A DNA stretch of 64,000 nt from Klebsormidium nitens (taxonomy: Eukaryota; Plantae; Klebsormidiophyceae), in contig DF236953.1 in NCBI GenBank assembly GCA_000708835.1, positions 296,990 to 360,989 of the forward strand. Reading direction: 5' to 3'. The number at the start of each line of letters is the position of its first letter. The stretch's first letter is position 1. Under the pieces are notes generated by a model. The model did no database searches. It was not told the DNA's origin and worked only from the letters and a program-made list of their open reading frames with translations. Both the position numbers and the translations under genes were made by a program. Shown one piece after another: positions 4,401-52,800 of this stretch.

Positions 4401-7400
4401 GAAGTTGGTTGCGTGGTCGTTGTGTCAACCCTGCCAGTGTGTTTTGGGATGCTCGGAACATGGTTTTTGTGCTTGGACAGAACGGATCGATGGTGGAATG
4501 ACAGTAGGCGGTTGAAAACAGCGGACAACAGACTGAGAGTCGGGAGGGCAGAATTGCGGTGAAGAGCTGTGGAAGTGACATAAACCTTCGCGCACAAACC
4601 GTGTGATCACTATGTGATGATGCCACAATCAGGTCGAGAATACGCTTAGTAACTCTCCAGAATGTCAAGAAACGAAACCGGACTAAATAACTCTTAGAAA
4701 TGCCAAAAACAGGAACCGGAACAAAATTTCCCCAATCTTGTAACCAACGACTCTTTTCCTCACCTGTCTGAACAAGTCCTCCATCCTTTCCTTGGCCCTG
4801 TCCACCGCCGCGGCCGCCGCGCCGACCCTCTGCTCGGCCGTCCTCACGTGCTTTTTCTTCCCCTTCCTAGTTACCTGCGGCCCCTCCAGAATGTCGGCGA
4901 TCTCCCTGTCGTATTCGGACAGCTTGGACGTCTCCACGCCCGTCCGATCCGCGTCCGCATCCGAACCGCCGGCCAACTCCTCCAGCTTCCGCTTGCCGCG
5001 GCGCGTCAGCCGGCCCGTGAAGGCTTCTGCGGGTGCTGCTGATCATGAGGTGAAAGCGTGACGTCAGCAGCTGTTTGGAAGCATGAGTAATGACGTCAGT
5101 GTCAAAGAGGGTCGTCCCGACAGTCGCCTGACATCACGGAATCCGTGCATGAGGTGCGTCAGCCGGCCAGTGAAGGCTTCCGCGGGTACTGCTGGTTACG
5201 AGGAGAAATCACGACGTCAGCAGCTGTCTGGACGCAAGGGTGATGACGTCGGTGTCAAAGACTTCGGTCCAGCGACAGTCGCCTGACGTCACGGAATATC
5301 TGCATGGGGTGCATCACTCGGCCCGCAAAAGCTTCCGCGGGTGAGGCTGTGATACGGACAGGTGAAAACGTCAGCCAATAATGCACCAAGTTGGAAGAGT
5401 TGATCGTCCGCTCTGAAGCCTGTCGGCCCGACCGAAGGGCGCTTCTTCTGACTGTGCTGTCTGGACGAGCAGACCATGACGCCAGCAAATGGTCCAACAC
5501 AGCGAGTAGGATTGCTCGATCTGAAAAGCCCTCGCATGAATTATCCGGACAAAAAGCCCACGTGCCTGCGGTATTGACCCACTCGAGCTGTGCCTCGCTG
5601 CGCTTCAGTGGACCGCTCATCCCAGGAAAGCTCTCCTCCTACGGCTGAATGAAGACCCTCAAACAAAGCTTCTCAACCCTCACGAAGCAAGCGGCTTTGA
5701 CGGGCTGCTACGTGGATCAAAGCAACTCCACTTGGGAAGACAAATACTCCTCGAAACAGTGAATCGAACGCTCTAAGTACAACAAGCCCTCGAATCAAAA
5801 CAACACCATATTTAAAGGTTTTTGCGCTCCGCACCCGTACCCACCCTAATCCCACCTGTAATCTTACCGTTCACTACGTTTAAAGTTCACTGCGTTCATT
5901 GGAATGGAAAGAGACTGTTACACAAAAGCGAAACCTCACCTGAGGTGCTCGGCCCCGCCCCAGAAGTCCATTCCCCCGCTTCTCCCCGCGCCCTCTGCCA
6001 GCCTGCCGACCGCCAAAGGGTGCTCTCTTGCTCCGTTACCCATTTTTGCTTCTTCTGCTCCGCGCGCGTCAGCTTCCGGCCGGCCTCGGCGGCCGCGATC
6101 CGCTCCGCGGTGATGCCCAGCTCGTCCTTAAAAATGGGGTTAAGAGGTTTTACAAAGTGGGGTCAAGAGGTTTAAGATTGGGGTTAAGAGTTGAGGAAGT
6201 CGGATTCAGAGGGTTGAAAAGTGGGGTTGAGACGGTTGAAAAAATGGGATTACGAAGGTTGAGAAAAGAGGGTTGAGAGGTTTGAGAGGTTTGAGAAGGG
6301 CCTCAAACTGATACGACCTCAAGAGAAAGTCCTGAAGAATCCAGACCGGATCTGAGAGGGTTCTCGTAAGAGGCTCAGGAACATTGTGATGAGCAGAAAC
6401 CAGTCGTGGGCTTTAGATCTTTGTCGACCGCTTGGTGCACTAGTACGAAGTTCCAGAGATCAGTCTGAGACTGGAAAGCACCGAGACTTTCGTAGTCACC
6501 CCTTGCATTAGAAGAATGCAGGAGCTTTCAAAACGTTACAACATCTCATGCGCTTCTCTAGACCTCAAGACCAAAGCTCATTGTTCTCAGACCCACCTCA
6601 AGCTCCGTGACCCTGTCCCCAACACTCCTCGCTCTTTCCCCGACTTCCTCCCCGACCATGACGTCCTTTTCGAGCAGTTGCGAGTAGGCCGTCAGCGCCG
6701 TCAGCTCGAGGCGCTCGTACGACGCTTTGGCGGCGGCCTGCCGAGTGGCGCGCTCTGCTTCAAGGTCGCCGTCCACCGGGGCCTTGATCTGGCCGGCGCG
6801 CTCGAGCGCGAGGGCTCCGCACCGGGCCAGGTCGGCGAGCAGGGGCTCGAAGATGTTCGCGGCTGGATGGTTCAGAAACGGGTTTGTCAGGTCCAGGTGC
6901 GGGGTTTCGTGTTAAGAGTCCTGGTATTGGGGTCCTGAATGGAGTAAGAGAACTCGGAGGGCGTCTAATGGGAGCATAGTACCAATGGACACCGTAAACA
7001 GGTAGGCAAGAATGGAATGATATCTCTAACTGGGTCAACAGAAGCTTGGCACCTCCCATCATCCTTTATGCTCTATTCACAATCAGCCGGCCACGACTGG
7101 TTCACGAAGATGCGAACGTCTAAATACTAGCAAAATGAAAGCGCCTCTCATTGGACAGTAGAGACAGACAGAAGGTTCGAGTGCCGGGCGAAAAGTCTGG
7201 CACCCTATTTCCAGCTGCATCGACCAGTACGAAGCGTGCCATCTTTCGACGTCAGCTCCTCCTTAGTTGCTTCAATAATCGCAAATCGATCGCAGATCCA
7301 GGCAGGGCCGCTCGTTCACCTGCTGTTTCTTTCTGCTTTCCGATGGCCACTGCCTGTGGACACGTGCCACCAGCCAGTCCCGGGCAGCAGAATCATGTGC

Positions 7401-21121: not shown

Positions 21122-21631
21122 CGCTCTGGGATGCATGAGATGCAAGGAGGTCACTCAAGCGCACCGGGGGCGCTACGAGGATTAGAATGCGCTGCAATCT
21201 CATTGGGCGGTTGTAGAGGAATGCTGACAGGGCGCAGCCGCCTTCGCTAGAAAGGCAAACTTGAATTTCAGGCTTTGATCAGAAGTCCACCTGCCTGGGA
21301 TCTAGCCAAATGCTTGCAGTTAAAGCAGGTGATTTGTGAAGTGAGGTTCATTTTGGTCGGCTGTATTCTTCAGGGACCACCCTGACCAGGGGCATCTCAA
21401 TATGAAAGGAGAGTACAACTGGTAGGGAACCACACCACTCAGGGATCCCCTGTCACAGTCTAGGTTCAGGAAGGGAAGGGTAGACTATTCCAATAAGAAT
21501 AGAGTGTCTAGCAAGGAAGTGCAGCTGCCTGCTGCTAATCTATGTCCCTCGCCGTGCCCTCCATCCGCATGACGGCCTTTCTGGCCGTCCAAACAAAACC
21601 AGGTTAGCGTCATAGAATCACTTGACCAGCG

Positions 21632-24600
21632 ATGCACCGGCAGCCAATGAGCAGCGTCGGCAGCAGCCTGGACGAGTACGGCAGGGCCGAGATGGAGTGC
21701 GACATCCCCCGCGTGCCCAGCGAGCGCTCGATGAGCTCAAAAGGGGCGACTAACGGACTCCGCACCCCCAGCCGCCGCACGCCCTCCCCCAAGCGCTTTG
21801 AGAAGCACCCCCTGCTTCGGTTTTTGACCGGACAGGCGCTCCTGAACGTCCTGCTAGCGGTCTACATCGTGTTCACCCTCCACTACTTTTACAGCCAGAA
21901 CACCCTGAGCTCCTCGGGGTGCATTGACGCGATGTCGGGCGCGTCGCCGAACGAGCTGCAGTACGTGCACAACCAGGCGCGCCCGGTGTTGTTACATAGC
22001 AGTAGGAAGGTGCAGGCGGGGATCGTGAATGGGTGGCACGATCCGAGGACCACGGTGGCGACGTGTACGACGCACTGGGCGAAGGGGATCGACAGGGTGG
22101 CGGCCGAGAAGCTGAAGAAGATGAGGATCTTCTTCTCGCTGAACCTGCGGGACAACGATGGAGGTGAGCCTTGCTCCTCGTCTTTTGTTCTGCTGGTGTG
22201 GAGATGTTGGGCTCTTGACTACCTGAATGGAGGTGCAGTTGTTTGAAGTGGATGGGAAGCCTGCTAAGCTTCAATGCCAACCCTTGATCAGTGATCATAT
22301 ACAGAGCTTTGCTCATTGTAAATGTTTAGATGGGGCTCATTCAGGGTGTTGTCGATCCGCCTCAGCTTTGTTGCGCTTGCTGTCGCGGCGCTTACTTTTT
22401 TGGGGTTGTAGTTGAACATGATGATTAAGCACTGCTCTGCTGAGGTGGAAAGTTTACCTGTATCTGTTGGACTCTAGGCTCAATTCTCTCTTCTACCTTA
22501 AAATGCGGACCTGGAGCTGTGTTATCTTGCATCTGCGAGATTTTGTTCATCCATAACATTGGTATTTTGTAACAAGTTTGTTGGTTGAATTGCGTAACTG
22601 CGTTCTTCTGCGCACGTACCACCACATATTGCATGATCGTATGCTCTGAGAGGAGGCCCCTGCGGGTGCGCTCCTCCAACCTAGAAGAGTTGTGGGTTAG
22701 GAGATGTAGCATATGTGGCAAACGTAGAATAAGAGGCACTGCGACAAGCAGTTCTGACAAGAAGTGCGCCGTTCGCCGCAGAATCTAAGGAAGGGAACCC
22801 CCTTGTGCCTCATGTTCAAAACTTTGGTGGTGAAGCTATGGTGCCTTGCAGGGTTGCTTTTCATTGGCTCGAAAGCAACGTTGATTTCCGTATGGCCTTG
22901 CCAGTGTGTCGCTACGTATTCATTCGTCTGCTGTCGAGAGGGTTGGGTCCACTTTAGATAGAGTGACAAGATCGAGAAGATCAGTCACCGTCGAATCTTC
23001 TAAACAATCTCCACATGATCACTTAGACAATCTTCTTACGCAACCACGGAACCCCAGAACCACCTGACGGGTCCGTTAACCGAGACGTAAGCTTGTTTAA
23101 TTATCCGGTGGGGTACAAAGACCTCGTTGCCCAGACCCCTGAAAACTTCTTTGCAGTCACGGCGCACCTGTTCCATGAGCTGACCCGGGTTCTGGAGCGG
23201 CTCTCTCCCCACAAAACGTTTCTCTCCATCTACGAAAGCGGGTCCACAGACGCAACTAGTCTGAGGCTGGAAACACTGGCGGCTACGCTGAACGGGATGG
23301 AGATCCCGCATTCAATAGTCGCGAACGGGATCGAGAAGCATGTGCACGAGACACGCATCGAGTTCCTGGCGAAGGTCCGGAATAAAGGGCTTGCTCCGCT
23401 TTTGCGACAGGTGGGTATGACCGCGGTTGTTCTTTCACAAGTCTTGTCTGCTGCTTTGTGCTTGTCGTTTTGGCTTGAGGTGGTCTGTCTTTCCCATGAC
23501 CTGCGTGATTCAAGGGTCTTCTGCAAACCTTTCAGGGGCATGAATTGTTGAGAAGCAGCTCGTATGCCCCTTCATCAAATGTTTCTGCTAATAAGAAAGT
23601 TGGAATGCTGCTTACGTTAGGCTATAGGGCTTCGTCTCCTGCTGACTTCTGCTCTTTAGCTGCCACGTGCCTTCTCAGGTTGTTGGCGTTTGGACAATTC
23701 TGGCTGGTAAGCAGATCAGAAGAGCCAAATTGGACAGTCGCTCTATGTGAAGCAGATGTAATCATAGACCTCACAGATACTGCATTGGTTTGTCTACGTT
23801 CTAGTTTACCACTTCCCTGGTTCGTGCAGATCTGGGACGGCCCTCACGGCAACGAGACCGGGCGCTACTTTGCGATGCAACCATCGTCAGAGAGCCCCCT
23901 CACGGGAATCGACGTCTGGTCTGACGATCGTCAAGTTCTGGGAATAGAGCTCTACACGGGAAAGAACAAGGCCGGCCGGTTTGGCTCTCCGGGGGGGGTC
24001 AAGCGGTCGCTGCATCTAGAGTTGGGAGAAGAATTTGTCGAGGCGGAAGGGAGCGGGGAAAACCAGGTTTTGTCCCTGTGGATAACGACGAGTCAGGGGC
24101 GGAAGGTGGGGGGAGGCTGTGCCACGTGTGTGCGCCAGTGGATGACGCGTGGAAAGAGGCTATTGGCCATCGCGGGGTTCGGGGGGTGGGGCTTTGAGCT
24201 GCAGCCGGGCGTGAACTCGATCAGCTTTGCGTGGGAGCTGCCACGGCAGGTGCGTTATTCCTGGCTCAGGGTTTACCAATCAATCCCTAGAAAAAACATA
24301 TAGGGAGCTCGTAAGCTTCGGATATGATTACTTCTTTCATGAAAGGCCGCGGTTTGTGGTAGCTTAGACTGTGCCGGAAGGTCGCGTTCTGATGGTTGAG
24401 GTGGAATCTACTCGGTCGCATCGCTCAGCGAACCAAGGACTCCTTCTTCGTTCCGGGAGCCTTCCCGAAGTTGGACGACATTCAGGCTTTCTGCTTCGTG
24501 AGTGGGCTTTCAAAACCCAGGTTCTCTGTCTTCTAGAAGCGTCCAAGACAACTCTGACCGTCGCACCTTGTGCCTGCACCCTGCTACGCCTAGAGCAACT

Positions 24601-27600
24601 CGTTTTTTTTTCAGCTTCGTAAGACGCACTGAACCCCTCATGAAGTCTCAAATTGTTCTTGTGCCTTCTTGTCACCAAAGAGGAGACCCTTCGGGGATGC
24701 CGCCAGCTTGAGCAGCCTATGCCCACTGTAAAGGGTGCGAGTCCCCCACCTCCTATTCCCACCATATCAGAGCTGATTCCCTTCATATTTGCAGGCGCGG
24801 AGATACGACCGCGTGGTCTACCTGAATGACGTCTACTTCTGCGCCGAGGACGTCATCCTGCTGCTCATGCACGACACCGCGCACATGGCGACAGCTGTCG
24901 ACACGCTCGGGGTGCCCCCCGAGGCGAACGCGACGCGGCTCTGGATGTACGACTGGTGGGTGGCGCGGGACATCGACGGGCAGACGATGAAGGTGCCGTT
25001 CCCGCCAACCAAGGTCAACCAGAGCATCAAGTGGTGAGAGTGTAGACCATTCCATGCTACTTTTGGGCTTTGGGGGTTCAAAATAAGAGCTTCGAATGTA
25101 TGACTGGTTGGTGGTGGCGCGGGACATCGACGGGCAGACCATGAAGGTGCCGTTCCCGCCAACCAAGGTCAACCAGAGCATCAAGTGGTGAGCGTTCGGC
25201 AGTTTGCGTTCTTTTAGTCGCTCTAGGGTTTCCGAATCTTGTAAATCAGCGCTTTGAAGTGGTAGGTGTGAAAGTGGTGAGTGACCTGCGACATTTACGG
25301 GCAGACGATGACGGCGCCCTTCCCGCCGATACAGGTCAATTAGAGCATCGGACGGGAAGACTATAAGCAGTCGTTTGGGCAAACTTGCCTTGGCTTTCGG
25401 GTTTGTTTTTGGTCTATGGATCTCCGCTAAAAGTACTGGTGCAAGCCCCTTCCCGTGCAACGAGATTGTGACTGTGGTTTCGCGGGTGTTCTACAGCAAG
25501 AAACTCGACTCCCCCTCCAGCCGCCTTTAGCTCCACAAACCTTTTACCAATTTGTTTGCGCAGGTTTGAGGAGGGCAAGCCCATTCCCGTGTACTGCTCG
25601 AGCAACGGGGATGAATGACGTCGACCTGCATCTGTTGTCCCACAAAAACATCTAGATTCAATCCCGCTTGTTGATTAACCACCTCTATTGACACTAACCA
25701 GATTTCGCGTGTACAGGTTTGAGGAGGGCAAACCCATTCCCGTGTACTGCTCGTGCAACGGGATGGTGAGCGTCGACTCGCGCATATTCTACGACAAGAA
25801 GCTGACGTTCCGGTCCAAGAGCTGGCACGGGGAGTGCTCCGCATCCGAGTACTCGCACTTTTGTGCGGACGTGTGGAGAGTCTACGGTCCGGACACGCGC
25901 ATTGTGATGGACGGGCGGGTCGTTGTGGCCTATCAAGAGCAGGAGGTGGGTTGTACTCTCAGATATTTGGATTTATCATTTGGGCTTGATGCATCTGCCT
26001 TCATGAGAGTTCTTGGGTCATGAGACCAGGTCTTTTATGAAACGGGACTTGGGGTTTTTGTTAGAAAGGTATTGTGCTACGGATGAAACTTGGTGTTACC
26101 GAATGTGCTTCGGCCTACCAAGAACAGGAGGTGGGCTGTCCGGAATGTTATCCCGCGCTAGAACCTGAGGTATGGGTTTGTTTTGAGGTTTGAGAATAAA
26201 TTGGCAGGTAGTTGTGGCTTATCAGGAGCAGGTGGGCCGTACTTTGAGATCTCGGGATTTAGGTTCGGGTTTGATGCAACGGTTCTCGTGAGCGTTTTGG
26301 GGTTAGTAGAGCTGCTTTTATGGAACTGGTTTTGGGGTCTCGAGTGTACTCTTGTAGTAGGGATGTCGTGCTTCGGATAATACCTGATGCATGTCGAATG
26401 GTCATTGGCGTATCAAGAGCAGGAGGTGGGCCGTCCTCAAATCAGACGATGTAGGGGTTGAGGGTAGGGTTATGTTTTTTGTTCCATAGCGGACGGGCGG
26501 GTTGTTGTGACTTATCAGGACCACATGGGGGGCTGTCCGGAAAGGTCACGGCTTTAGGATTCGGGTTAGAACTTAACCCTTGAGGTTCGAGGGTGATATC
26601 CGGGTGTTGGGAGAATGTCGTGCTTGCGGATGGGGAGATTGTGGTTTGCCAAGAGCAGAGAACTGGCCGGAGCCTGCTCGCTTAAACATACTCAATCTTC
26701 TGCCTTGCACTCCCACCGTAGATTCCTCACTTGTATGACCGCCTCAGGGCTTTGAGTTGCCTTTCGGCCCCTCTGTTCGCTGTGGTGGAGGCATGCAGCC
26801 AGTGACCAGCAAAAAGCGGTACCCTTTGCAGAGCTTCAGCCATTCCAGATGTGACACAAAGACAAAGCCCCAGCCCCTAAGATCTAAAAGTAGAAGGAAA
26901 GTCACCTGAGCTACAGTTTTTGGCTTCCCCTTGGAACGGAGTCACACGTTCATAGCTCACCCCAATTTTCCAAGATGTGGATCCACTACATAACTGCCAA
27001 CCTCAGATTCCAGAACCCCAACGTCGTCTCAGAAGATTCATCGGACCCACTTTCAAGTATTCGTACTGCAGTGGAGACACGTGGCCATGGCCCGCCGAAA
27101 AGCGGTCCCCCCCCACATGTCCACCCCGCAAGACGTGGGCATCCGACCAAACCCGTGGCTGCCTCTACCCCCCGTAGATCGCACCCTTGTGTATAACACG
27201 CTCAAGCATATACCAGCCCACATCGAACCACCCATTACAACCAGGTAAGGGTCTCTTGCTTTCTTTGACTAGTCACAAGCTTGTATGCTAACGAAGGGCA
27301 GCGATGAGATTGTTGATATGCTTAGATCTTTCCAGTCCGTCATGAGAATTGGCTTGTGACATCCGTGTGCTGGCTTTGACCGCTCAGCGATGAATTAAGC
27401 ACGACATCAAAATGCAATCTAGCGGCCAGCCCTCTTCTTTGATCCGCTCAGATTGTCTCTTGCTCGTTTGACAAGCTGCCTATGCTCCATTCTTCCGTTT
27501 CGGACTTCGTTCTTTCCTGCTCCAATTCCCCGCACCTCCCTCCCGTTCTTCGGTGCAAAACGAGCTATTCGTGGAGTCCTATCCTCGGCGCAGAGGATTC

Positions 27601-30600
27601 CGAAATCCGTCCCCTTCTGAGGCGCTTTCTCAACTGCAGCTGCGTACCGATTCACGAGGACAGCGCGCGCGAGGCAGTTCCGCGCTGGGCATACGAGATC
27701 ATGACCCCCAACCCGCTCGCGAGCCCGCCCAACGACTGGAAGTGGTCCGCGTTGAGCCAAATTCGAGACGGTGAGACCGTCGTGCTTTCCAACGTAGCAT
27801 TAGTGCCTTACCGGAACCGTATGGTTCCGAGTAAATAAATAAACTTTTGCCCCTCGGCCCCTCGGAAAGCTACATTACCTGTCTTCCATTCGATAGTGAT
27901 TTCCCGGATCAGTAAATTATCGCCGACTTGCTGTCGGAATCAAAAATACATCAACCTGTCACCCCCTTAGCAGCCTTTTGGGGGGCAAAATGCGCTCGGG
28001 AGCGTTGTCAGGGCGGATTCGGAAACAGGGTCGGATGCATTGAAATTATTTTTCAAAAGAGGTCGTAATCAATCAAATAATCGTCACTCTTGAGCATTTG
28101 GAATCATTCCGTTCCGGTGCGGTAAGCTCTAGCTATAGTAAGCTCCTACATCAACAATGAAAACCTACACTCAAAATCCAACCCACAGAATCGCCTGCTC
28201 CGTACGCATACCCACCCAAACCCCCAAAGTGACGTCATCACGTCCCAGACTGGTTAGCTTACCGTTGCGAAAGCTAATTATTGCACCTTCGAAGATCGTT
28301 CGCCTAAGTTTCCTTCTTGTTCGGATTCGTTGCATCATTGTGTCAATTTTTGGTTTAAAGATGCCTCGTACGGCCCAACGTTTTGACCTTTTCCGTGTGC
28401 CTGTTTCCTTTGCATCCGCCAGTTCAACCAGCCCCGATGCCACGAACTGTCATTCTAGGCTCTTGCATTAGAAGTGTTTGAGTTCGTGTTGAGTACTCTT
28501 TAGTGTCGCTACGTGACCTGCGAAAGTGTCAATTAGGCGTTCCCAATGTTACACCTTGAAATTCGAGCTCGTTAATTGCCGGACATGCTTAGAGCAAAAG
28601 TAACGAGGCGCAGAGCGGGAGACTAATCCTCGGCGCTGGAAAGAGCGACCCTAGCCCAACCTCTTGAACAATTTTCATTGCGGCGTTCGGTTTCGGGCAG
28701 ATTTCCGCTTCGCGATTCTCCCTGAAGAGAATCTTCTGTCCTTAGTCAAGGCCGCACAGAAAGACACCGGTCCACAGAATCATTGCGCCATTCCTACTTT
28801 CGAAAGCCTTTGGAAAGAGAGTGAATCTCGTTCTCCCGGTCAGAACAGTTTAAGGCTCGACTCGAGGTGTTTGAATCTGAATTGCAACCGAGGCCTTAGC
28901 TCAACCCGGTCCGTTCTTTGCAGACTGGAAGCTGCCGCGTGAGAGCGAGCCTGGTTTGTCTCTCAGTCACAACACAGCCGCAGGTGAGCCTTGGTGTTGT
29001 TACTCATAAGCCTCTTCTTCTTGCATCTGAGAACGCCGCTTTCCCTAGTCGCGAGCATGGGCTTCTTCGTTTTGATCTTGGCTACTTTGGAAAAGGCCGG
29101 ATCATATCTCGATGAGAAAGAACCGATCGTAAGGAACGGGCTAAGCCAATGTTTACCAAGAAGTGGGGGGCTCCTCGTCCACCTTTTGTTGGTACCTCGG
29201 GGAGTGTAGTTTTCAACGGCTTTCAGCAGCGATAGCTGGAAGAGTAAAAGCGCAGAGTCTGATCTGTCTCGGAGCCTTAGTCTATCCGTTCGCGGCTCCA
29301 TAATGAGATCATTTTCTTTCTTAGTCCTTCCCACTCTCGGGGTCTAAGCCTGTAAAGCCTGACACTCGGCCTCGGCAAAGAGCGCCTTCGCAGTGCCCGA
29401 AAGATCAGCACGCGTAAGCCCCAAAGGAAGAGCACTTTGCAGCGCATGAAAAGTCAGCACTCGTAATTCCCAAAACCTTATTCGCACCGTCTCTTCACAG
29501 GCCCTCTCAACGCGTACGGCTACCCGCTGTCGCCCCACGCGTCGCGGCTCTACAGCGGGAACGTAATCCGGATCGGGGAGGGCAGCCGGCTCGTCTCCAG
29601 AAACATGAAGTACATGCTGTTGTTCCAGTACGATCGCAGAGTGGTGACGTATCAGCTGGGTTTCCCGCTGAAAGCGGTGTCCGAGTGGCAGCCCGACACG
29701 CTGAGCAGCGTCCACGTGGCAATGCAGAGGGATGGTGAGCCCGCCACGTGGCATGCTTAGTTGTCCTTTCTGAGCCGGTTCTGCGTTTCGAGTGGCAGCC
29801 CGACACGCTCAGCAGCGTCCACGTGGCAATGCAGACGGATGGTGAGCCCGACACGTGGCATGCTTGCTTCGTCTTTTCGACATCTTTCCTTGAGTTCTGG
29901 TAGAACACGCCGAAGGGCGTCCATATGGCAATGCAGAGGGATGGTGAGCCCGCCACGTGGCACGCTTACTTGGCCCTTTTGACCTGTTTTTGTGTTCTGA
30001 GGGGAGCCTGAGAATGGCGTCCCTGTGGCAATGCGGAAGGACTGTGAGCCTGTAACGTGGCGTGTCCCCTTCGAGAGCAAAGGGAATACTGACGTATGGA
30101 TCTCTTCCTGTGCTAATTCCAGATTCTCAGTCAGCGAATTACCTTCGAAGCCAAGAACGACAAGCCAGTCCTCAACTCTCGCCTCTGGAGTGAAGAATCC
30201 CTTCCATTCTCGCGACTTACAAGCCTCATTTCTGTTCATGCAGGCAATGTAGTGCTGTCTGGGACGAACGGCGCCCCCAAATGGTCCTCCGAGACAGCCG
30301 CCGGGAACAAAGCGTACATGGAGCTGTCCAACAACGGAACGCTCGAGGTGCGGGTAGACACCAACGGAGCGTCGCGGCTGCTCTGGACTAAGTCCACCAT
30401 CGCCCCTCTGAATCCAAGTAAAGGTGCGGCGCTTCGTGACGTACATAGCATGCGTTATCTGCGTTTCCTTGTCTCTTGTTTTGCTTGGGGATATAGCATA
30501 TAGCATCTTGAAACTACCGTCGAGGCCAAAAAGGTGGTGATAGCCCCGTCCAAACGTTCGTGTCCTTTTCGTACGAAGATCGGTCGTTTGACCGGAAGAT

Positions 30601-49800: not shown

Positions 49801-52800
49801 TAAGAACGAACAAATCTGAATCCTTTGATGCGCGTCTGCTACAAGCAATTTCCGGATGGAATTTTGGGGTGGATCTGTGTTCAAATGTGTAAGCAACTAA
49901 ATGCAAGGCAACTATTCGCATTCCGCAGGTCAATCTTCAAAAAGATGGTATGCGGACATACTGAAGACGTGCAATCAAACAGGAGAGTCGTCCCTTCAGG
50001 AGTCGTCGTCTGACGTCACCCTTTCTGTTGCAGCTGCTGCAATGGCAGAAACGGATCACGTGGGGCCCCGACGGCGAGCCTCCCCCCCACTCAGGGCGCA
50101 TGTACCGGGTTGCCCCCCACAGCACGTATAGCCCGCTCCACCTGGTGCCGAAGCCAGTGGGGAAGCTTAGAGGTTCCGAGCTAGACCGGAGGGGGGTGTT
50201 TGTGGTGGACGCCTCGAGCGGGCAGGTTTTCGTGTGGGTGGGCCAGGGCGCGCCGCACAGCATGGCGGAAGCGGGGGGGCGGATTGCGGCGCAGCTGGTG
50301 CGGTACGAGCGGGCGAAAGGCCCTGTCACGGTGGTGCGGCAGGGGCAGGAAGGGGCGGAGTTCTGGGCGGTGATGAGCGCGGGTGGGGGGGACGAGGCCT
50401 CGGAGGAACGGGGCCAGGAACTAGACGCGGGGAAGGTGCAACGGCGAGAGAGCAGACCGGTGGAGGTTGACAGAGACGAGGGAGGTTCTGAGGGGGATAC
50501 CTCAACAGCTAACCCGGGTGCTAACCCTGACGGTCCGGTGGAGGTGGGCACGCTGCCGGCTTATGATGCGGATTACGAGCTCTTCCGTCGGGCCGAGAGC
50601 GGGGAGATCAAAATGGCGACCCCTGGGTCTAGCGTTCTCCCAGGAGCAACAAAACCGATGTCGCCAACCAAAATTGCGAAAGAGGATCAGAAACAGTCCG
50701 GCGTCAGCGGCGCCCCCAGCCCCCGTGGCGAACCGATTCTAAGAACGGCCGTACGGACAGAGGATCCATCCACAGCACCAGATCAGAGCAGCAAGGCCAG
50801 GAGAGATCAGCCAGGGGGGAACGGACAGACTGCCCCGGAAACCAAGCTGACGTCCCCCCCGAACAGGAAGCAAGCACAGCCCGACGTTTTTGTCCCGTCC
50901 GTAAGCCGATCATACCCAGTGTCCACGCTGCCCCCCCCCTCGCCGTCTCTCCCGCCCCCAAACAAGCGCAGCAAGTCGCCCACGACCACAGAAACCGCCG
51001 CCCAAAGCGCCGACGTTCTTTCGCCCCCCCCTCCCTCCCCGTCCTCTTCCATGGGCAGCTTCTACAAGCAGCACCGCGTTTTGTCTCCCCGCCCCGGGCT
51101 TGATCTGTCCGAACCGAAGCCTCGCAAGAGCCCCTCCAATCTCGGTCCCCGAGCCGATTCCAGCGGGGGGGATGCGGCCACTCCCCGTCGCCGATCGTTG
51201 CTTTCCGAGGAGAAGGCCGGGGCAGCGGAGGCTACCCGGTCGATGGAATGGGGGTTGGCGAAAGACGCGGGGAAGGAGTCCGGGGGCCAGACGCCCCGCC
51301 AGATGTGGCCCCCTGTTTCGGAGGTGCGGCAGGCGCACTCCTCCTTTGCGATATCGCCGAACTTTGGAGGCTCCGAGCGCGCCTGGACGGTGCCCGAGTC
51401 TCCGCGGGTGGTTCGCCGGACTAGCTTTCCGGGGTTTGCGGTGAGCGGGAGTCAACATCCGGAAAGCCCGGGCATGAGGCCCGCCCGGAATGAGGAGGCC
51501 AGGCCAGCTTTGCCCGGGGGTGTGGCAACTCCGGAGAGCGATCCAAAGGACGAGAACGAACAGGAAGCAGAGAGGTCGGTGGACGAGCGACGTGAATCTG
51601 CGGCGAGTGGGGAGGAGGGCAAGGGAGAACCGAACCCCCGAGAAGAGACCCAGTCTTCAGAGCTCGGCGAATCCCGTGCCTCGGACGGGTCCGAAAGTCG
51701 AGGAGCGGACAGCTGGGCAAAGAGGCGGCCCGGTTTGCAGATCCCCGGCGTTGAGTCGGTCAAAGTTGATGTGGCTCCTGTTAGCCCGGTTGGGCTCCTA
51801 CCGGGCGCAGAGGTGCTGAGCCCGGGGGTGTCGGAGGAGACCGATGATCTGGTGACGGAGCGGATACCCCCTACTGCGAAGAAGCTGGAGCTGCTCGCTG
51901 GAGGGGGGGAGCTGGTGGAGTCGAGGGATTCGCCGATGGACGTCGACAGGAGACAGTTCCGTGAGCGGGGCAGAGCGACCCCAGTGAATCGCGCCAGGGG
52001 GGAAGAGAAGGCAGAGGTCGAGGGGGGGCCCCGGCTGTTCGAAGCCCCCCTGTTTGAGGAGGTGGAGATGTTCGACACGGACGATTTGCACTCCGAGTCG
52101 GCGTACGTTTTGCTTGTGAATTCGGACGGGGCTTCGGACGGCGGAAAGGGTCGGGACATGTTTGTTTGGTTAGGGGCGGACTATTTGAAGCAAGGGGATG
52201 ATCGTCGAATCAGCACGGGCAGTGCGATGTCGACTGACTCTACCGCGGAGGAGGAGGAGTTCAAGGATGGGGGGAGCATAGGGGAAGACTTTGTGAGGAG
52301 GAATGGGCTCCCGTCCGAGACTCCCTTTGTGGTAAGTGGCCCTCATTGGTAGGATTTGTATTTTATCTGTCGCGCGTTTCATATGCAGGTAGGTAAGTGA
52401 GTGGCGAAACCCCTTGGGAAATGACTTTATGATATGGAAGCGGCTCATTTCCAGGACTCCGTTCGTGGTAAGTGGCCCTCGTTTGTGGGACTGGTAGACC
52501 TTCAAGTGCGAACAAGTGATCTTTTGGGGGAAGCCCAGTCACTCGTTCCCGCGGCGCCTTCTCTGTCGATCTGGGAAGTGCACGACGCTTGGTACCAGGC
52601 AGACATGAGCCGACAACAGACGCAGATGATTGGCATTACTTGCAATATCTCTCTGTTCATTCGCTTGCCAAGTTGTCTCCATCGGTCAGCCAAAGGGCCT
52701 CGTGTGCTGGCAAGGGTTGGGCGTGTGCCGCTTGTGCTATCAATCGTAGACACAGTTTCGCTTGACCATGGGCGTCCGGGCGACAATCATAGAGTCGAGC

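Follow-up and report, generated by a model that had tools for sequence, protein, structure and literature searches.

Lectin modules on glycosyltransferases determine the sites and the density of glycan addition, and in the known cases the module is appended at an end of the chain. The GT27 polypeptide GalNAc-transferases have a C-terminal ricin-type lectin domain that steers follow-up glycosylation, and the plant GT31 enzyme GALT1 carries a galectin domain. The founding members of glycosyltransferase family GT69 are Cryptococcus Cmt1 and Cap59, and the Pfam profile of that type (CAP59_mtransfer, PF11735) is unbroken through positions 108 to 114. Here, we report a GT69 gene of the alga Klebsormidium nitens (GenBank GCA_000708835.1, contig DF236953.1, positions 296,990 to 360,989 of the forward strand; this whole stretch of 64,000 nucleotides is called the window below) in which a single exon, exon 3, places a jacalin-type beta-prism domain at this point of the catalytic domain. 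The beta-prism insertion is almost certainly real, expressed, and conserved.

Part of this architecture is on record. An InterPro-based lectin survey lists the combination "mannosyltransferase 1 (CMT1)/GNA" three times, in K. nitens only among 21 species, and lists no jacalin for K. nitens (Van Holle and Van Damme 2019, PMC6362431, Suppl. Table 3). The CMT1/GNA genes are probably the same small gene family as the window gene, and the inserted prism is not in the published architecture; the GT69-GNA fusion is therefore known and the inserted prism is not. Literature searches found no published description of a jacalin domain inserted in GT69/CAP59, or of a lectin domain inserted in a glycosyltransferase, and nothing on GT69 in Klebsormidium; the two papers naming both jacalin and GT69 were irrelevant. 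The statement in the original prediction that it knew of no description of this architecture agrees with these searches, and also with the ESM Atlas fold search described below, where no Jacalin cluster carried CAP59_mtransfer (PF11735) as a partner.

Exon 3 (window positions 23830-24249, + strand) is 420 nt long and free of stops, with ...gtgcag directly before it and gtgcgt directly after. The CAP59 motif RIEFLAKVRNKGLAPLLRQ ends upstream at 23410, and the CAP59 motif ARRYDRVVYLND begins downstream at 24795. Exons were scanned singly against PF11735 (cut-off, 28.8 bits), and exons 2, 4, and 5 each scored above the cut-off: exon 2 over profile positions 13-108 (E 2e-16, 60.8 bits), exon 4 over 114-177 (E 9e-14, 52.1 bits), and exon 5 over 190-242 (E 9e-8, 32.5 bits). 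The 140 residues of exon 3 stand in place of about 5 profile positions, between 108 and 114; they follow the helix ...FLAKVRNKGLAPLL and precede the strand ...RVVYLND. The likeness to Cryptococcus Cmt1/Cap59 comprises this match over positions 13-242 in three exons and the type-II anchor layout, whereas the algal protein adds the 140-residue domain and an apparent C-terminal bulb-type lectin region. A sequence search of the PDB with the GT69 exons found no solved relative.

The fold of exon 3 was approached by sequence and by predicted structure. In a phmmer search against PDB sequences, the best match was the lectin WGA16 (3woc/3wob; E 1.3e-6, residues 6-140), with ZG16p and banana lectin following weakly, and 28 of the 30 language-model neighbours of exon 3 in the ESM Atlas were Jacalin clusters. 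The AlphaFold2 model of exon 3, built from a 10-row alignment (A1), had a mean predicted local distance difference test score (pLDDT) of 91.8 and a predicted template-modelling score (pTM) of 0.86, with 12 strands between residues 2 and 135. Foldseek placed this model on ZG16 (E 9e-10; template-modelling score [TM] 0.81), WGA16 (TM 0.82-0.86), and banana lectin (TM 0.78-0.80), with ZG16b, Mevo lectin, and Calsepa among further matches and an overall TM range of 0.75-0.86. It returned 133 PDB chains at E <= 1e-3, and the best 50 of the 133 were all jacalin-type lectins. A shape search of the ESM Atlas with the same model found Jacalin clusters only; their partner domains were ricin, Endotoxin_N, phosphatase, aerolysin, and metallopeptidase.

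The closest described proteins are the animal lectins ZG16p, ZG16b, and WGA16 (PDB 3apa, 7o3i, 3aqg, 3wob/3woc), which share with exon 3 the 12-strand beta-prism I and a length of 135-140 residues. They are its best matches in sequence (3woc, E 1.3e-6) and in structure (TM 0.78-0.86), at an identity of just 19-25%. These lectins are free-standing and secreted, whereas the exon-3 prism is inserted inside an enzyme.

On the family profile itself, exon 3 is less conspicuous, and this weighs against the assignment. The Pfam Jacalin profile (PF01419) matches residues 4-119 with an E value of 7e-4 and 20.5 bits, under the curated cut-off of 22 bits, and an exhaustive search with exon 3 in 1.84 billion representatives gave only 10 matches at E <= 1e-3. 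Such figures could suit a chance or compositional likeness, with exon 3 as an unrelated beta-rich loop expansion of GT69, a reading that is extremely improbable and that we regard as refuted for practical purposes. The relatives exceed the cut-off (the 75%-identical orthologue P0011, 38.7 bits; the 86%-identical exon of locus L002, 22.8 bits; P0004, 25.4 bits), the match to a solved jacalin-type lectin is full length at E 1e-6, the more distant database matches are bona fide Pfam Jacalin proteins, and the confident model has TM values near 0.8 to many solved jacalin-type lectins. The 10 matches were made up of 4 exon fragments of relatives, 5 strong Pfam Jacalin proteins (ZG16-like and Endotoxin_N+Jacalin), and 1 repeat artefact.

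Three of the matched proteins (P0005, P0007, and P0009) have a delta-endotoxin N-terminal (pore-forming) domain followed at the C-terminus by a jacalin domain, with no GT69 context. The artefact, P0003, is a 492-residue repeat protein matched over residues 55-109; it has no Pfam Jacalin match and was set aside as a low-complexity or repeat hit.

From the model and the searches together, exon 3 is securely predicted to be a complete jacalin-related beta-prism I domain, nearest to the ZG16/WGA16-type lectins. Much of the original prediction is upheld at this level. Its clean phase-0/0 cassette of 140 codons is confirmed by the stop-free translation and the AG/GT borders, the flanking motifs do belong to CAP59 by the PF11735 matches of exons 2 and 4, and skipping the exon would keep the frame and the usual GT69 spacing (phase 0/0, profile 108 to 114). 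The jacalin motifs that it quoted (IWDGPHGNE, LTGIDVW, VLGIELY, FGSPGG, VLSLWITTSQGRKVG, and VNSISFAW) are all found in exon 3, and its jacalin-like beta-prism is borne out by the phmmer E value, the 12 modelled strands, and the Foldseek TM of about 0.8.

The GT69 gene spans approximately 21.6-30.5 kb (+ strand) of the window and codes for a type-II membrane glycosyltransferase of the CAP59/CMT1 type. For the transcript test, public contigs of 4 runs from 4 studies (two organism labels) were aligned to positions 21600-27500. The features are as follows.

Exon 1, 21632..22163, + strand: start codon, cytoplasmic tail, signal anchor, and stem, ending where the GT69 domain begins (...MRIFFSLNLRDNDG); RNA contigs colinear from 21600 to the joint 22163/23157.
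Exon 2, 23157..23410, + strand: N-terminal half of the GT69 domain, with the phase-0 end ...KGLAPLLRQ; joints 22163/23157 and 23410/23830 in 4 runs.
Exon 3 (jacalin-type), 23830..24249, + strand: 140 codons, phase 0/0, predicted complete jacalin-related beta-prism I domain; present in transcripts of 4 of 4 runs.
Exon 4, 24795..25033, + strand: GT69 domain resumes (ARRYDRVVYLNDVYF...); joints 24249/24795 and 25033/25717 seen in RNA contigs.
Exon 5, 25717..25945, + strand: C-terminal end of the GT69 domain; joints 25033/25717 and 25945/27072 seen in RNA contigs.
Exon 6, 27072..27244, + strand: Pro-rich linker, no Pfam match; joint 25945/27072, with contigs extending beyond 27244.
Exon 7, 27640..27770, + strand: linker; start backed by contigs, end (donor g/gtgag near 27770) inferred from sequence.
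Probable exon, 29501..29734, + strand: bulb-type (GNA-like) lectin region, part 1; borders inferred from sequence, frame continuing in phase from exon 7, no Pfam match alone.
Probable exon, 30244..30420, + strand: bulb-type lectin region, part 2; borders inferred, 3' end uncertain, weak Pfam B_lectin match (E 0.12, profile positions 26-74).

The contigs matched the window with 0 mismatches and were free of introns, with GT..AG joints at 22163/23157, 23410/23830, 24249/24795, 25033/25717, and 25945/27072. Because they lack introns, the contigs are RNA-derived (the run type in the index is only guessed). Two of them (2964 and 3813 nt) cover exons 1 to 6 in a single piece, and the contig letters beyond 27244 (CTGCGTACCGATTCACGAGG...) equal the window from 27640, directly after a cag. 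The open reading frame begins at the ATG at 21632, with an in-frame stop immediately upstream. By hydropathy, residues 65-83 of exon 1 form one hydrophobic 19-mer (mean Kyte-Doolittle value, 1.9) with basic residues N-terminal to it, and this single anchor with its preceding basic residues indicates that the host protein is a type-II, lumen-facing membrane enzyme, as in Golgi glycosyltransferases.

The symmetric phase of exon 3, together with the preserved frame and GT69 spacing on skipping (profile 108 to 114), would also suit a regulated cassette, in which alternative splicing yields two forms of the enzyme, with and without the lectin module. We consider this very improbable. Exon 3 is in all contigs crossing the region in the 4 runs, and the skip joint 23410->24795 was in none of them, although assembled contigs drop rare isoforms; the exon is also as constrained as the catalytic exons (see below). 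The suggestion in the original prediction that the module is toggled by alternative splicing is thus not borne out, with only the inclusion joints 23410/23830 and 24249/24795 seen. As far as assembled RNA can tell, exon 3 is constitutively spliced in.

The introns of this gene have a structure of their own. They contain decaying tandem repeats of the adjoining exon edge, splice site included, at 24959-25362, 25561-25762, 25909-26536, and 29700-30061. Copies of the end of exon 4 with its GTGAG donor lie at 25113-25195 (98%) and 25280-25362 (72%), the end of exon 5 with its donor has four repeats (61-78%), the acceptor with the start of exon 5 has a 96% copy at 25561-25609, and that of the bulb-lectin exon recurs about 2.4 times at a period of 102, giving repeated donors near 29734-30050. 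Among the repeated splice sites in the stretch covered by the contigs, transcripts take the first donor and the last acceptor. The same pattern was seen in the relative L003, and such exon-edge repeats may be a genome-wide habit. Elsewhere in the window, one 2-kb bin (50001-52000) had a G+C content of 0.657, versus 0.48-0.57 in the other bins.

Relatives of the prism exon were found in an ENA assembly, Logan contigs, and JGI metagenomes, and lie as follows.

L002 (ENA assembly), prism 86% identical: prism exon 5956-6375 between CAP59 exons at 5163-5414 and 7050-7286; the same cag and gt borders.
L006/L007 (Logan), prism 75% identical: 140-codon exon, borders as in the window.
L001 (Logan), prism 34% identical: CAP59 exon ending ...APLLDQ before gt; prism from cag through IWDGPFGN... 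to gtgagg; then ...RFDRVLILND at the contig end.
L003 (Logan), prism 44% identical: CAP59 exon and, after it, the N-terminal half of the prism up to an extra internal intron.
L004:3124-3566 and L005:2407-2849 (JGI metagenomes), prism 62-69% identical: broken copy, interrupted by stops and a frameshift and internally duplicated; weak GT69 remnants nearby.

Between the window and its orthologue L002, the ratio of nonsynonymous to synonymous substitution rates (dN/dS) was 0.12 in the prism exon, versus 0.05 and 0.10 in catalytic exons, and no intron similarity was detectable between the two. Since the layout is common to the 86%-identical orthologue and the 34%-identical locus, and dN/dS is 0.12, the comparison indicates that the beta-prism insertion is old relative to the divergence of the copies and maintained by purifying selection. 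The L004 and L005 copies were excluded from the evidence of function; their stops, frameshift, and duplication mark a decayed copy or paralogue, or poor assembly.

Beyond these loci the layout was scarce. Metagenome scans with alignment A2 and with exon 3 alone gave no matches, and a word search for proteins of 145-462 residues, made with region 108-247 of the stop-free stretch 23509-24300, gave only the exon fragments P0011 and P0001. None of the 10 matches of the exhaustive search was a long protein in which GT69 flanks the prism at either end. That library keeps eukaryotic genes mostly as exon fragments, so the absence of the prism-in-GT69 layout elsewhere is weakly supported. As far as databases show, the layout is confined to a narrow algal lineage.

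How the prism came to lie here is best explained, on sequence grounds, by exon shuffling, which we consider probable. Domain and exon end at the same points, the phase is symmetric (0/0), and L002, L006, and L001 have the cag and gt borders of the window exon; shared exon borders in copies at 86%, 75%, and 34% identity are what exon shuffling predicts. No donor gene for the jacalin exon was identified. The module would have entered the loop between the helix ...FLAKVRNKGLAPLL and the strand ...RVVYLND. The first and last strands of the prism share one Greek key, which would bring the ends of the domain side by side, so that the prism hangs off the loop and leaves the glycosyltransferase fold intact; because the ends lie together, a loop insertion of this kind would be tolerated.

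What the prism binds is a separate matter. Mannose is bound in ZG16p and banana lectin by the GxxxD-loop Asp, which contacts O4/O6 in mannose-specific members. ZG16b- and WGA16-like relatives without this Asp are not known to be classical mannose binders. Several observations weigh against the algal domain as a binding module that guides the enzyme. In profile, pairwise, and multiple alignments, the GxxxD-loop Asp of ZG16p (...GSLID...) aligns to Asn129 of exon 3 (...PGVNSISFAW), and at this position L002 and P0011 likewise have Asn and the divergent P0004 has His. Read by eye, the other two Greek keys of exon 3 have no GxxxD and no Asp at equivalent positions. An N-x-T sequon (N8-E-T, residues 8-10, window 23851-23859) lies in the counterpart of the sugar-binding GG loop; L002, P0011, and P0002 share it, and P0004 lacks it. 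By general GT-A topology, the loop entering the strand that ends in the DxD-like ...LND motif would face away from the nucleotide-sugar site, which would speak against direct selection of acceptors by the prism at the active site. With the canonical Asp replaced by Asn or His, mannose specificity cannot be claimed and sugar binding is only a hypothesis: the exon-3 domain may bind sugar, in a non-canonical way.

Other features of the domain are conserved. ZG16p and exon 3 both keep the GG-loop glycine before K/R-x-F (G11 in exon 3, before R12), differing at the GxxxD Asp, and the three close orthologues all retain a Cys-x-x-Cys pair at residues 97 and 100. Invariant among the algal copies are G4, P5, G7, N8, G11, Y13, P23, L24, G38, G49, R50, and G52.

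The prism could accordingly be weighed as a degenerate lectin fold that has lost sugar binding and whose role is that of a structural spacer, oligomerisation surface, or protein contact (for example, in a Golgi enzyme complex or in quality control). Jacalin-related lectins are commonly dimers and tetramers, which would suit such a role, as would the loss of the Asp (Asn129 here, His in P0004), the lack of GxxxD in all 3 Greek keys, and an invariant set made mostly of fold-defining glycines and the GRxGSP loop, not of the classical binding loop. The retained GG-loop glycine before R12 points the other way, and a second lectin-type region in the same protein suggests that glycan recognition is part of its job; the constraint seen in a dN/dS of 0.12 is compatible with either a degenerate or a binding lectin. 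On balance, we hold the degenerate-fold reading to be rather unlikely, though a serious alternative.

The explanation that we favour, and think probable as a whole, is that a shuffled prism in GT69 acts as a lumenal accessory binding module. Most likely it would work in the lumen of the secretory pathway, where the prism and the C-terminal bulb-type lectin region may together hold the enzyme on its acceptor, on already-made glycan, or on a glycoprotein partner. Its ligand need not be mannose and may be no sugar. The narrower proposal, that the prism binds a ligand functionally and so guides the transferase, rests on analogy and is tentative, with a little less than an even chance in our estimate. 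The original prediction of an exon-shuffled lectin graft in a mannosyltransferase therefore stands in part: the jacalin fold inserted in GT69, the symmetric phases, and the shared borders support the graft, and the mannose-binding half of the claim is weakened by Asn129 and by the His of the divergent copy.

Set against the known lectin-assisted glycosyltransferases, the inserted prism is an addition. The proposed principle is the same as in the GT27 GalNAc-transferases and GALT1, namely a carbohydrate-binding module in the chain of a Golgi GT-A enzyme. Those enzymes belong to other glycosyltransferase families, use other lectin folds, carry the lectin at one end, and have proven binding, whereas the algal GT69 enzyme has its lectin inserted within the catalytic domain and its binding is hypothetical. 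It is possible, if doubtful, that this is a Golgi glycosyltransferase family of charophyte algae with two lectin folds, the inserted prism and the C-terminal bulb-type region, forming a self-guiding enzyme, able to read the very polymer that it writes, and that the published survey missed it through the sub-threshold score of the prism or the absence of a frame-neutral exon from public models.

The gene places a whole lectin fold inside a GT-A catalytic domain as a single, frame-neutral, long-kept exon, in an alga whose lineage lies near the origin of land plants, and, to the extent that an origin by exon shuffling holds, it illustrates clearly how this process inserts a domain. It also carries a caution for annotation: an InterPro-based survey lists no jacalin for K. 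nitens, and gene predictors can drop exon 3 without breaking the frame. For the plant lineage, the prism offers a handle on the unknown glycan of the GT69 enzymes, and if it does bind the product, the protein would give a compact model of processive glycosylation under lectin guidance.

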